64,000 nt of DNA from contig NIVC01001069.1 in NCBI GenBank assembly GCA_002269645.1, forward strand, positions 248,001-312,000. The letters are read 5' to 3'. The stretch comes from Macrostomum lignano (lineage: Eukaryota). The first letter of the stretch is position 1. Each line of letters starts with the position of its first letter. The position numbers were made by a program, and so were the translations under genes. Below, piece after piece: positions 26,420 to 61,085 of the stretch. The notes beneath the pieces are model-generated. The model was not told the DNA's origin and searched no databases. It was given only the letters and a program-made list of their open reading frames with translations.

Positions 26420-26808
26420 ATGACAGGTTTGTTGTTGCAGCTGTGTTTCTTGTTGCTATGCCAACACGCGCCAGTTGGTCGCTGCCTGCTTCATCGGAGC
26501 TGCACCAACCGGCTCAGTCTGTACGTTGTGGTACCCAGGTGCACGGCTTACTATGTGAATGCGGCCCTGATTGACCCGGCTTACCGGCTGGGCTGGCGGG
26601 CGGTGCAGAGACGCCAGTCCGAGTTCCATCCGCTGCTTACTGGCTCCGGCGACAGAGCGGTCAGCCACCAGTTCATCTACGAGGATGTCAAATGGTACGA
26701 GAAAGTCCTGGAGGGTGTGACAGACGGTTCAGCGACTGATGTGGAGACGGTGGACCCATACTACCTCAACTACAGGATGAACGCCTACTTCTATAATGTT
26801 TCCGTTGG
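26420..26808 (+). CDS. ANF-receptor cassette 1, exon 1 (signal peptide + domain start)
   Basis: MTGLLLQLCFLLLCQHAPVGRC signal-like segment; LSLYVVVPRCTAYYVNAALIDPAYRLGW resembles the N-terminal strand/helix of natriuretic peptide receptors; phase-2 donor GG|GTGAGT compatible with the acceptor at 35232. Confidence 0.75.
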
Positions 26809-26844
26809 GTGAGTCTTGCGTTCGTTTTATGCGGGGCAATGATG

Positions 26845-27520
26845 ACGAGAGGAGGGGAGATGTGGGGAGAGGAGATGCGAGGAGAGGATATGTGGGGAGA
26901 GGAGATGTGGGGAGAGGAGATGTGAGGAGAGGAGATGTGGGGAGAGGAGAGGAGATGTGGGGAGAGGAGAGGAGATGCGAGGAGAGGAGGAGAGAAGTGG
27001 AGAGAGGAGATGTGGAGAGAGGAGATGTGGGGAGAGGAGATGTGGGGAGAGGAGATGTGAGGAGAGGAGATGTGGGAAGAAGAGATGTGGGGAGAGGAGA
27101 AGAGATGTGTGGAGAGGAGGAGAGATGTCGGGAGAAGAGAGAAGTGGGAGGAGGGGAGATGGGAGAGGAGAGGAGATGTGGGGAGAGGAGATGTGAGGAG
27201 AGGAGATGTGGGGAGAGGAGATGTGAGGAGAGGAGATGTGGGGAGAGGAGAAGAGATGTGTGGAGAGGAGGAGAGATGTCGGGAGAAGAGAGAAGTGGGA
27301 GGAGGGGAGATGGGAGAGGAGAGGAGTTGTGGGGAGAGGAGATGTGAGGAGAGGAGATGTGGGGAGAGGAGATGTGAGGAGAGGAGATGTGGGGAGAGGA
27401 GAAGAGATGTGTGGAGAGGAGGAGAGATGTCGGGAGAAGAGAGAAGTGGGAGGAGGGGAGATGGGAGAGGAGAGGAGATGTGAGGAGACGAGGAGGAGAA
27501 CTGGGGAGAGGAGAGGAGAA
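26845..27520. repeat. GA-rich 15-bp-based array (GGAGAGGAGATGTGG)n
   Basis: Visible tandem array just inside the intron. Confidence 0.9.
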
Positions 27521-27924
27521 GAGGGTGGTGTGGGGATGTGGTGGTGTGGTGGTGTGGGGAGACAGGAGAGGACAGAGGTAGGTGAGCAGAGACACTGAGC
27601 CTGGAACTGTGGAGCTGAGTGGGGGGCACTGTAGAAGCCCAGCTGAGAAAACAGCAGGGATGATCATCAACTCAATGTGCTGAGAATCGGATAACGCACT
27701 TCTTTATATCCAAGCTTCTGGCGGAAGCACGTTGAGAGCAGCGAATAAGAGCTCATTCCAGACCTCATCAGCCACCAGTCGAGTCCAGTCTGATTACTCA
27801 ATAATTTATATACGAGTAGCTTGTTGCATCGGCTGGCAACTCAAGAGTTAATAAATACACTATTATCAAACCCTTCCAGTTCATGTTGCTCGAGAGTTTG
27901 TGGGGAAAATCGGGGAAATGGGGA

Positions 27925-28279
27925 AAATAGTTAGTTAGTTAGTTGGTTAGTTAGTTAGTTAGTTAGTTAGTTAGTTAGTTAGTTAGTTAGTTAGTTAGTT
28001 AGTTAGTTAGTTAGTTAGTTAGTTAGTTAGTTAGTTAGTTAGTTAGTTAGTTAGTTAGTTAGTTAGTTGGTTAGTTAGTTAGTTAGTTAGTTAGTTAGTT
28101 AGTTAGTTAGTTAGTTAGTTAGTTAGTTGGTTAGTTAGTTAGTTAGTTAGTTAGTTAGTTAGTTAGTTAGTTAGTTAGTTAGTTAGTTAGTTAGTTAGTT
28201 AGTTAGTTAGTTAGTTAGTTAGTTGGTTAGTTAGTTAGTTAGTTAGTTAGTTAGTTAGTTAGTTAGTTAGTTAGTTAGT
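27925..28279. repeat. (TAGT)n microsatellite
   Basis: Nearly pure tetranucleotide run. Confidence 0.98.
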
Positions 28280-28726
28280 AAATGAAAGGTTAGCCCTAGT
28301 TTTAGCAAGTGCATAGAAACGTCTGTGCAGGTGTTGGGCGGGAGCCTGCCTGCACCGGTGATCCAATTATCACTTTGCTCGTAAAGGATACTTCGAGTCA
28401 TTCCGAATGATGCGGCTGTCGCTTGTGCGAGACGTTGAAAATACTCGTAATTAAAGACAGAAATTCAGCTTAAGCTGCAGGCCGCGAAAATTGCGGCGGG
28501 GCATTTGGAGTTCTCAAGCTCTTATCCTGCTCTCATCTTCGGGAGAACGGCTAACCAGGCTGCTGTGCTGTGGCATTCACGAAATTTTGCAGTTCATTTT
28601 TATCTTTTAAAAGTTCGATTAATTATGTTTTGGATCATCTGTAAAGGTTCTAGTAGAAAGAAAAGTAAAGTGTACACTTTTTTGTTCTCAAAAAGCTAAA
28701 AGTCTAAAAGAATCCATCTAAAAGAA

Positions 28727-28919
28727 GGGATAGCCAAGTGGCTAGAGCATCGGACTCACGACTGAAAGGTCGGGAGTTCGACTCTCGACCAACTCGGAAC
28801 AATTTGCGTCCTTGAGCAAGACACTTAACTCTGCATTGCTTCAGTTCACCCAGCTGTAAAATGGGTTTCAGCATTAGCTGGCGTAATTGAGGATGTGTGG
28901 TGACCCCCTCCCCTCCTTG
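28727..28919 (+). mobile_element. tRNA-derived SINE with CORE-like central domain
   Basis: A-box TAGCCAAGTGG (28731), B-box GTTCGACTC (28776), then CCTTGAGCAAGACACTTAAC...CAGCTGTAAAATGGG resembling the MIR/CORE domain; (CAT)n tail follows. Confidence 0.8.
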
Positions 28920-58650: not shown

Positions 58651-59139
58651 AATCACACACTATCTATACCTATAAAAATGAAATCCCTAATAAATATCAT
58701 TTTATCTCTCCTTATTCTCATACTATCTCTGCTACCACTGCCCTTTTCTTACCTATCTATATTTTCCCTCACTTTACAGGCCTCCGAAACATCACACGCT
58801 TCCCTTTCTCACTCCTTCCCTCCTACCAGCGCTCTCTCACCTTCTATTTCCTGTGTCGCTGACTCCCTGATAATTTCTAATGCGGCAGTATCAGCCAACC
58901 CGGATGTTGGACAAGATGGAGCGACCGACAGACGGGGGTTGGCTGCAAAAAAATCATAGCAACGAAATGGACGAAGCGGGAAGCTGGGGAGATGAAGGGG
59001 ATCGCCGGAGCTCCGACCGGGGCGGGAGGGTTGCTGGGTAGGCCAACCAACCACCCTATTTCCCAACCGGAAGCTGCTGGATTTCACACCTCAGCGAACT
59101 GTCACTGCTGAATCTGTCACTCATTGGAAGCCTCTGATG

Positions 59140-59522
59140 AGCTCAACTCACTCATTTGTTCACTCACTCGCACAGTCACTCACTCATTCACTCACTCACT
59201 CATTCACTCTCTCATTCACTCACACAGTCACTCACTCATTCACTCTCTCATTCACTCTCTCATTCACTCACACAGTCACTCACTCATTCACTCTCTCATT
59301 CACTCACTCACGCAGTGACTCACACATTTACTCACTCACTAATTCACTCTCTCATTCACTCACACAGTCACTCACTCATTCACTCACTCGCTCATTCACT
59401 AATTCTCTCACTAATTCACTCACTCATTCAATCAGTCACTCACTTGCTCGCTCACTCACTCATTCGCTCACTAATTCACTCAATAACTAATTCACTCATT
59501 CACTCATTCACTCATTCACTCA
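59140..59522. repeat. (CTCA/TTCA)n microsatellite
   Basis: Tetranucleotide run. Confidence 0.92.
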
Positions 59523-59982
59523 TGCTCTCAGTCGCGGGCTCATAAACTCACTCATACGAAACTCATATTTTAGCTTGTGATTCTCCACGTCTATCTTTCT
59601 GTCAAAGTTCCACAAAGTGGTCCATATTTAGCCTCTGACCTTCTGTAGCTGTTTCTCTATTTATCGTTTCCTTATTTAATTTTTTGTTTACATCGTTATC
59701 AGTTTTATTATTCTTTTCCGGCTGTGATAATGTCTTTTTTTCTTACCTGGCTTAGTCACAAAATAGCTGCAAGTCTTTTGAGTTCCAGATTTTCATCTTT
59801 TCCGCCTTTGCTGAGCTGATCTTCCCGACAGCACATCTCGACTGTCTGTCTGTCTGATTCAGTCACACTGCCTCGCGCATCAAGCAAATACACTGCCCCG
59901 GTGACGCCTGAAGGAAAGCAAGGGATTATGCGATTTCGTTTGGCTGGCTAGAATTCCCAATGCTGGCTCAGATTTCACGATT

Positions 59983-60170
59983 AGATAGATAGATAGATAG
60001 ATAGATAGATAGATAGATAGATAGATAGATAGATAGATAGATAGATAGATAGATAGATAGATAGATAGATAGATAGATAGATAGATAGATAGATAGATAG
60101 ATAGATAGATAGATAGATAGATAGATAGATAGATAGATAGATAGATAGATAGATAGGTAGGTAGGTAGGT
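59983..60170. repeat. (GATA)n microsatellite
   Basis: Pure run. Confidence 0.98.
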
Positions 60171-60662
60171 GATGGCTGAGCTGATGGGCATCAAGTTTGC
60201 CTCATCCTACTTATTGACTTCCTATTCCCCCGCTCCTGTCCAATTCGAAAGCCGCCCCAGCTTGATGGACAGGTGAAGTCGCCACAGAAACCCCAGACGC
60301 GGGCCTCCCATCCGGTAGGCAAAAACCCGCCCAATGCTTCCCCTCTAATCCCGCTCTCATTTCTCCCATCAGGCTGGGTTGCGGGTGAAAAAGTACCAGT
60401 GAGTTCTGCTCACAAACTCTGATGTTTCCTCCACTGCTATATCTTCTCTCTTGCTTCGAAATGTACTTTTATCGAATCGTCGCTCTAGTAAGATCACTTG
60501 CGCCTGCATGGATGGGTCTGTCGGGACTGTACCGTGATCTTCTGGCCCCTCTGCTCAATAGATGTCATTAGTCAGCAGTGGTAATACTGTTTGCCTGGCT
60601 GAAAAGTCATTTGTGGCGCCAGGATAAATTCTATCTCAAATCCCACCCCTACTTCGTCGCAG

Positions 60663-61085
60663 GTCCCTACTGCTCCTTTTGTCTTGGCGCCGTGGCCCGG
60701 TACAACCGCTACCACCTGTACCAACGGCCCATCATCACCTCGGGCGGCGGTGCCAGCGTCCTCAACAACAAAGTGGAATATTACAATCTGATCCGAGTCG
60801 GCCCCAGTCACGAGCAGATCGAAGAGATGTTACTCAAGATATTTAAGCACTACAATTGGAGGCCCAGGCCTGTGCAGACTGTGCTGGTCGTTGGGCCACC
60901 AGATGAGATCAACTCCAGGCAGCATCAGTCGGAGTCCATCATCTCTGACGCCTTGGTGATGAGCGTGGCCATCGAGAAGATGCTCACTCAGCCGAATGTG
61001 AGCTACATCGCCAGACGGCTCACGTACAAGCCAGGGAGGCCGCACCTGGCCACCCAGCTGTTCAAGGTGTTGGAAGAGGTTCGAA
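60663..61085 (+). CDS. ANF-receptor cassette 4, exon 2
   Basis: Acceptor CTTCGTCGCAG (phase 1) restores VDLMLG|PYCSFCLGAVARY; RPIITSGGG...EYYNLIRVGPSH..IEEMLLKIFKHYNWR. Best donor is A|GTAAGG at 61086 (phase 1, after LEEVR); the 3' boundary is less certain than in cassettes 1-3. Confidence 0.84.

Follow-up and report, generated by a model that had tools for sequence, protein, structure and literature searches.

A probable array of four alternative 5′ cassettes on one receptor guanylyl cyclase body in Macrostomum lignano

The window analysed here is a stretch of 64 kb from the flatworm Macrostomum lignano (assembly Mlig_3_7, 764 Mb; C1069:248001-312000). It carries on one strand four exon cassettes, here called c1 to c4, each of which opens with a start codon and encodes the N-terminal part of an ANF-type ligand-binding domain. 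Nine further exons, which encode the rest of a receptor guanylyl cyclase, lie just past the end of the window. We propose that these elements belong to one receptor guanylyl cyclase gene of the NPR-A/gcy-28 type, in which four alternative 5′ cassettes are joined to one shared body, and we put the probability of this interpretation at roughly 0.85.

Four cassettes and the body beyond the window

All four cassettes lie on the same strand where the preliminary description of this DNA had placed them, and they translate as it had given them. Each of the four opens with an ATG and a sequence resembling a signal peptide, stays in open frame and closes with a GT donor in phase 1 (Table 1). The cassettes encode 268 (c1), 348 (c2), 231 (c3) and 240 (c4) amino acids, and the internal junctions of c1, c3 and c4 are all GT..AG with matching phases. 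Pairwise identity among the four is 21-27%. Three of the final donors had been described as aligned and the fourth as lying near them, but all four occupy the same homologous intron position, directly before the strand VVLCA. The last base of each cassette, which stands one base into a codon, is T in c1, G in c2 and c3, and A in c4.

Membership in the ANF_receptor family (PF01094) is recovered by the Pfam profile for c1 (27 bits), c3 (33 bits) and c4 (57 bits), in each case over the N-terminal part of the profile only. This check fails for c2, which scores 11.8 bits against a cut-off of 25.4 bits; a family-specific hidden Markov model (HMM), built from the N-terminal parts of 100-odd relatives, matches c2 with 92.6 bits (E 8e-27). 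Exon 1 of c1 matches the N-terminus of PAA62240.1, and homologous exons 1 are found, in unchanged order, at the paralogous loci B, C and D described below. Just past its signal peptide c2 contains an in-frame 33-bp tandem repeat (43513-43640, 3.9 copies) that encodes STASLADATRD. The c2 copy on a 665-kb contig has many more repeat units, giving a protein of 1333 residues (PAA81054.1), and the length of this coding-exon repeat is therefore polymorphic.

A constant body beyond 64 kb had been predicted, and it is present 2.6 kb past the window end, at window-equivalent positions 66596-75916 (C1069:314596-323916). It was located through two PF01094 matches just past the window end in a scan of the genome, and its exons were then read from the DNA. 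The downstream DNA also holds the anticipated phase-1 acceptor exon that continues the ANF domain (cattttgacatttcag^TCGTGGTTTTGTGC, where ^ marks the splice junction): the acceptor of the first body exon reads cattttgacatttcag^TC GTG GTT TTG TGC. The codon split by the junction becomes F with c1, V with c2 and c3, and I with c4, and is followed by VVLCADPDTV.... Two acceptors upstream of 66596, at 66487 and 66505, are in phase 0 and were dropped from the gene model. Open frames of ionotropic glutamate receptor (iGluR) and class C G protein-coupled receptor (GPCR) type, returned by the first PF01094 scan, were of no use as splicing guides.

Joined to the nine constant exons, each cassette yields a single open coding sequence, of 1198 (c1), 1278 (c2), 1161 (c3) or 1170 (c4) residues. 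The constant exons encode the remainder of the ANF domain (PF01094, 121.9 bits), a hydrophobic membrane segment, a kinase-homology domain (KHD) and a cyclase. In PAA72669.1, the public model that corresponds to c2 plus the body, the KHD (PF07714, 125 bits) is followed by the cyclase (PF00211, 234 bits). The hydrophobic run ALYAVVVLLVLICFLTILIFVIY after the ectodomain is a candidate transmembrane (TM) segment, judged by eye. From -20 kb to +104 kb, tblastn with the body exons and two custom HMMs, which were run with --max on all open reading frames of at least 20 residues, found exactly one body. The same searches found no second-half ANF, TM, KHD or cyclase exon between the cassettes, where the preliminary description had likewise seen none, and thus no exons there that could serve as the private downstream part of a single cassette. 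Nor did they find a further cassette from -20 kb to c1.

The proposal that a chosen cassette is spliced onto a common body is borne out by public gene models for c2, c3 and c4. PAA72669.1 (GenBank, BOX15_Mlig001010g1), annotated on this contig, is identical to c2 plus body over 1278 residues. PAA49188.1 (BOX15_Mlig013975g1) represents c3 plus body on a sister copy, consistent with C3954, with one substitution in 794 residues; after the 794 compared residues, near its end, it has a frameshift, and it falls in a protein cluster represented by a 252-aa c3 read-through model. UniProt A0A1I8GAT2, a model of uncertain basis from the older ML2 assembly, is c4 plus body from Met35 with three substitutions. 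The GenBank annotation of M. lignano is a genome-guided RNA-seq transcriptome rather than an ab initio prediction (PMC5730564), and the c2 and c3 joins are therefore RNA-seq derived. The annotation pipeline combined StringTie and TACO, the latter with isoform-frac 0.75, with TBONE and TransDecoder (PMC5730564), and the TACO isoform filter could explain why each assembly copy shows a single isoform. At paralogue D, PAA62240.1 and PAA92895.1 join a c1-type cassette to the D body, and we infer that c1 of the window locus is used as well. In a transcript contig from the Logan collection (SRR28338163_312250, 1677 nt), a c2-type cassette is followed by body exons 1 and 2 with the introns removed, after which the sequence enters a retained intron (CAGG^GTGAGT). 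Because its protein is 76.6% identical to that of the B paralogue, this contig comes from a related species.

Two other public models depart from these joins. In UniProt A0A1I8F652, c2 is linked by LSKR, four odd residues, with the middle of c3 exon 1, which is either a real splice or a prediction error. UniProt A0A1I8GDP6 has 65 residues inserted between c4 and VVLCA, by way of an exon at about 63.9 kb and the phase-0 acceptor 66505. The insert is without ANF homology and is probably a prediction artefact, although it could be an alternative splice.

Table 1. Exons of the cassettes and the body, with candidate promoter elements; body positions are window-equivalent, and ^ marks an exon end.
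Feature	Position	Strand	Remarks
Cassette c1 exon 1	26420..26808	+	Begins with ATG and signal-peptide-like sequence; first ANF strands divergent; donor leaves 2 split-codon bases
Cassette c1 exon 2	35232..35647	+	End ...KIGLSRA; phase-1 donor T^GTGAGT
Cassette c2, single exon	43399..44443	+	End ...KVGNRLS; phase-1 donor G^GTGAGT
Cassette c3 exon 1	51046..51383	+	Translation, ANF_receptor match
Cassette c3 exon 2	52964..53319	+	End ...RIASKYS; phase-1 donor G^GTAAGA
Cassette c4 (canonical type) exon 1	57778..58075	+	Phase-1 donor
Cassette c4 exon 2	60663..61085	+	Phase-1 acceptor; end ...LEEVR; phase-1 donor A^GTAAGG
Body exon 1	66596-66707		
Body exon 2	67614-68176		
Body exon 3	68805-69601		
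Body exon 4	70028-70199		
Body exon 5	72849-73007		
Body exon 6	73161-73621		
Body exon 7	74627-74870		
Body exon 8	75522-75712		
Body exon 9	75824-75916		
NF-Y-type CCAAT box AACCAATGA	26289..26297	+	131 nt upstream of c1 ATG; candidate promoter element
TATAAA	43222..43227	+	177 nt upstream of c2 ATG; weakly supported candidate for a promoter element
Two NF-Y-type CCAAT boxes AGCCAATCA, AACCAATGG	57531..57585	+	247 and 201 nt upstream of c4 ATG; candidate
Possible small extra exon between c4 and body	63836..63970	+	tblastn 70% identity to the peptide inserted in A0A1I8GDP6; doubtful

Repetitive and mobile DNA fills much of the locus. About half of the cassette region (~17 of 34.7 kb) consists of tandem repeats with a TRF score of at least 200, and the intron between body exons 1 and 2 (window-equivalent 66712-67600) is nearly all (TATC)n, whose translation as an uninterrupted (LSIY)n frame exceeds 300 residues and inflates open-frame lengths in six-frame scans. 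On the minus strand of the c1 intron, 30580-33429 holds a fragment of a mobile element, with a GIY-YIG domain (24.5 bits) beside a 453-aa frame that has a YIDD reverse-transcriptase-like motif; by eye the element looks Penelope-like. The left part of the window contains a plus-strand coding region of the long terminal repeat (LTR) retrotransposon type (1716-7726), in which Gag-like frames stand just upstream of a 1103-aa frame (4415-7726) with zinc knuckle, aspartyl protease, RVT_1, RNase H and integrase domains. Between this region and c1 lies the terminal exon of a Ras-family small GTPase (19247-19693, plus strand; PF00071, 114 bits), Rab-like by eye and ending in ...SSCCK. The neighbouring gene on the upstream side probably ends with this exon, and c1 is therefore likely to be the first cassette.

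The exchanged half of the ectodomain and its conservation

The ectodomain formed by c4 and the constant half aligns over its whole length with NPR-A ectodomain residues 3-427 (E 6e-59), and the switch from cassette to body falls at 'GR^VIYICSSPD' in this alignment. The exchanged piece aligns with NPR-A residues 1 to ~206, the part that we take, from structures of atrial natriuretic peptide (ANP) with NPR-A, to hold most of the hormone-contacting residues. An AlphaFold model of a c2-type ectodomain (pLDDT 77.5, pTM 0.53) has alternating strands and helices throughout the cassette, and its top Foldseek matches are NPR1, NPR-A and NPR-C, over ~465 columns with E 2e-26. Because the model is of middling quality and reaches a global TM-score of only 0.40-0.46 with the NPR structures, it supports the assignment of the fold and not the geometry of the lobes. 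In a topology of the periplasmic-binding-protein (PBP) type, the cassette would presumably form the first segment of the membrane-distal lobe together with the first strands of the proximal lobe, and both lobes would therefore be mosaics of variable and constant parts. The "N-terminal lobe" of the preliminary description is only roughly right in this respect: the cassette corresponds to the N-terminal half of the domain, but on the assumed topology it is not a whole lobe.

Four paralogous bodies, A (the window locus) to D, are present in the genome, each in 2-3 near-identical copies, a number that fits the known redundancy of the assembly. The order c1 exon 1, c1 exon 2, c2, c3 exon 1, c3 exon 2, c4 exon 1, c4 exon 2, body is found at A (C1069), B (C323) and C (C1022), with the architecture of B and C taken from genome-search coordinates. 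Paralogue D (C3357), whose DNA was read directly, has c1, c4 and the body only, and both of its cassettes are open with phase-1 ends. The cassette exons of the paralogues are 33-68% identical to those of A. Stops in some of the exon-1 matches are taken to lie outside the exons, because self-matches that run past the exon end show them too. A maximum-likelihood tree recovers each cassette type (c1, c2, c3 and c4) as a monophyletic group across the paralogues, with 100% support, which places the origin of the array before the gene duplications. One sister copy (C553:577304-588703) carries c3 twice, 9.6 kb apart, both copies being 98-100% identical to the c3 of the window; the doubling reflects either a tandem duplication of recent date or an error of assembly. 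Three TGA stops and one TAA stop interrupt a fifth copy of the constant-ectodomain exon (C3117:48052-48584, minus strand), which is likely a pseudogene of the receptor cyclase family.

The same switch point recurs beyond the flatworms. We sorted the 120 best relatives into groups that share the entire sequence downstream of the motif V[VI][LM]CA; in many species the isoforms of a single gene are identical from there on, and all their differences (62-80% of residues) lie ahead of the motif. Distinct N-termini number at least four in Mytilus, four in Mercenaria, and three each in Argopecten and Haliotis. Alternative N-termini at the same motif occur also in Ostrea, Crassostrea, Saccostrea, Mya, Biomphalaria, the nemertean Lineus and Hymenoptera, and a cestode case emerges when an Echinococcus sequence is paired with a Logan transcript contig. 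Two types of cassette end recur: c4 is of the '..(S/A)R^I' type, and the ends of c1-c3 are similar to '..(V/I)Gxx(Y/F)x^V'. In the tree, c4 groups with canonical cassettes of molluscs, Capitella, Lingula, Lineus, arthropods and cestodes (support 90/87). The branches of c1-c3 are very long, and the tree gives these three no clear placement relative to the V-type cassettes of molluscs. RefSeq pairs from Megachile, Apis and Odontomachus connect a V-type cassette to the body either directly or via the canonical exon 2 (+132 residues), in frame, a type of join that c4 exon 2 of M. lignano would also permit.

A library-wide search with the c3 protein returned many proteins of ~250 residues that consist of a single cassette and stop a few residues past the switch motif. 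They usually carry a 'GK...' tail, the translation of the donor G^GTAAG, and two- and three-cassette fusion models are also among the matches. These ~250-aa ANF_receptor proteins appear to be unused alternative cassettes that were miscalled as genes by reading through the donor. For annotation purposes, a tail that starts with GK (GGTAAG as codons) flags such a read-through.

Choice of cassette and competing explanations

If our interpretation holds, the window would contain the 5′ two-thirds of the gene, with the four alternative 5′ cassettes in tandem. Each cassette would bring its own start codon and signal peptide along with the initial ~200-230 residues of the ANF-type domain, and all four would end at the same ancestral phase-1 intron. 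In a transcript that starts at one cassette, the last donor of that cassette would be spliced to the single acceptor at 66596, with any intervening cassette exons skipped, and the shared exons would add the remaining ANF domain, the transmembrane helix, the KHD and the cyclase. In other words, the predicted products are four receptors of 1161-1278 residues with different hormone-facing halves and one signalling module.

The choice may be made by a promoter before each cassette, as the CCAAT and TATA motifs and the example of C. elegans gcy-28 suggest. Outside a CAAC-type tandem repeat (61.2-61.8 kb), the 64 kb hold no NF-Y consensus site on the plus strand other than those before c1 and c4. 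At paralogues B and D, too, CCAAT consensus sites precede the c1-type ATG, at distances of 108-174 nt, and one inverted CCAAT is found upstream of c3. For C. elegans, gcy-28.c and gcy-28.d were cloned with different forward primers and one reverse primer, and have separate promoters of 3.2 and 2.9 kb (PMC9249223). One isoform is expressed broadly and the other is specific to the AIA interneurons (PMC9249223; PMC8816384), and a functional role is on record for a gcy-28 splice variant (PMC5290486).

Several observations weigh against a single gene with a promoter for each cassette. Support for the junctions of the window locus comes from public gene models, and c1 plus body of this locus is in no public collection. 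The promoter motifs are weak for c2 and c3, and at paralogue D no promoter motif was found upstream of c4. Internal acceptors are present in c1, c3 and c4, and that of c4 exon 2 is frame-compatible with every upstream donor. Simple first-exon logic alone does not explain the skipping of c4 exon 2, because its phase-1 acceptor fits the upstream donors; the c2 and c3 models skip this exon. The low global TM-score of the c2-type model counts on the same side, as do the frequency of trans-splicing in this species, the stand-alone c3 protein in UniProt and the near-saturation of dS.

The same gene and the same cassettes could be served by spliced-leader trans-splicing of one long precursor that starts upstream of c1, a route that we consider unlikely. 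In M. lignano 38.8% of genes are trans-spliced and ~7% of assembled transcripts are multi-gene precursors (PMC5730564), and the promoter-like motifs before c2 and c3 are weak. The NF-Y CCAAT boxes 110-250 nt upstream of c1 (at A, B and D) and of c4 (at A) argue for local promoters instead, as does the use of separate promoters with different expression patterns by C. elegans gcy-28.c and.d. In addition, no spliced leader was seen in the 153-nt 5′ untranslated region of the c2-type transcript from the related species, as judged against the expected leader sequence. Another alternative is that some cassettes, c3 especially, are independent small genes whose transcripts read through the donor and are polyadenylated, yielding secreted half-ANF proteins. 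UniProt does list c3 by itself, in the form of a 252-aa read-through protein, together with a 249-aa counterpart from paralogue B, and many proteins of ~250 aa with the same layout occur in other genomes. The read-through tails are unconserved, however, with GKNESEPSE... at A and GKRNRFRKAP... at B, and the fact that they share GK alone argues against a conserved secreted half-domain. The foreign ~250-aa proteins also end in GK, the donor read as codons, c3 plus body exists as an RNA-seq-derived model, and a half domain would be without the remaining strands of both lobes. We therefore regard independent half-ANF genes as very improbable.

A last alternative, in which only c4 is functional and c1-c3 are truncated copies of the gene's 5′ end that have begun to decay, is hardly credible. 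The suspicion has some basis in the high divergence of c1-c3, in their low Pfam scores, with c2 at the bottom, and in the lack of the usual cysteine pair in c1. The absent cysteines are common to the c1 type at A, B and D, however, and 2-3 assembly copies of each of 3-4 paralogues preserve both the open frames (231-348 aa) and the splice sites, at 33-68% identity, while c2 and c3 occur in full-length models derived from transcripts. Selection points the same way. In Nei-Gojobori comparisons, made for A vs D only, dN and dS are 0.555 and 1.07 for c1 (dN/dS ~0.5), 0.396 and 1.46 for c4 (0.27) and 0.312 and 1.07 for the constant ectodomain (0.29), ratios that are rough because dS is near saturation. 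All three lie below 1, whereas the preliminary description had named a dN/dS near 1 as the mark of truncated duplicates.

Relation to known systems and significance

The preliminary description knew of no such architecture in this family, but public annotations already show it, and databases include the products of c2, c3 and c4 from this locus. Because gcy-28 has alternative N-terminal isoforms with separate promoters and RefSeq shows the same switch, the layout as such is not new. The gcy-28 c and d isoforms belong to the same receptor family (several close matches are named 'gcy-28-like'), and they too differ in their 5′ coding ends and have the 3′ end in common. This likeness refers to the 5′/3′ layout. 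M. lignano differs in having four cassettes, in an array that is kept in 3-4 paralogues. A further correspondence is with the RefSeq isoform sets called 'atrial natriuretic peptide receptor 1-like' in molluscs, Lineus and Hymenoptera, along with the cestode pair. The switch x^V[VI][LM]CA is identical in these sets, and their alternative N-termini are 20-38% identical, have a signal peptide each and show the two end types, all with the caveat that the sets are computed models.

Clustered protocadherins and UGT1A resemble the array in that tandem 5′ units with their own start codons are joined to shared constant exons. The units of the M. lignano locus differ from the single-exon units of those clusters, since three of the four have two exons with an internal acceptor. 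They also number only four, and each encodes part of one fold rather than a complete ectodomain or substrate domain. To our knowledge, vertebrate NPR1 has no alternative N-terminal cassettes. The domain order of the M. lignano products, ANF-TM-KHD-cyclase, is that of vertebrate NPR-A (NPR1; PDB 1dp4, 8tg9).

We found no paper on the conserved cassette array, on alternative first exons in receptor cyclases or on Macrostomum cyclases, and the absence of one on the conserved array leaves room for a comparative study. As a tentative and rather doubtful extension, we suggest that the array may be one case of an ancient, protostome-wide system for exchanging half an ectodomain, in which the canonical and V-type classes of cassette predate the splits between flatworms, molluscs and arthropods, and each cassette is used in its own cells and has its own specificity for a peptide ligand.

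As far as we know, invertebrate NPR-like cyclases are mostly orphan receptors. Exchange of the hormone-facing half would be expected to change ligand specificity. If the cassettes do set the specificity for ligands or partners, one gene would amount to four receptors with one output, and the locus would diversify its receptors by a logic comparable to that of the clustered protocadherins.

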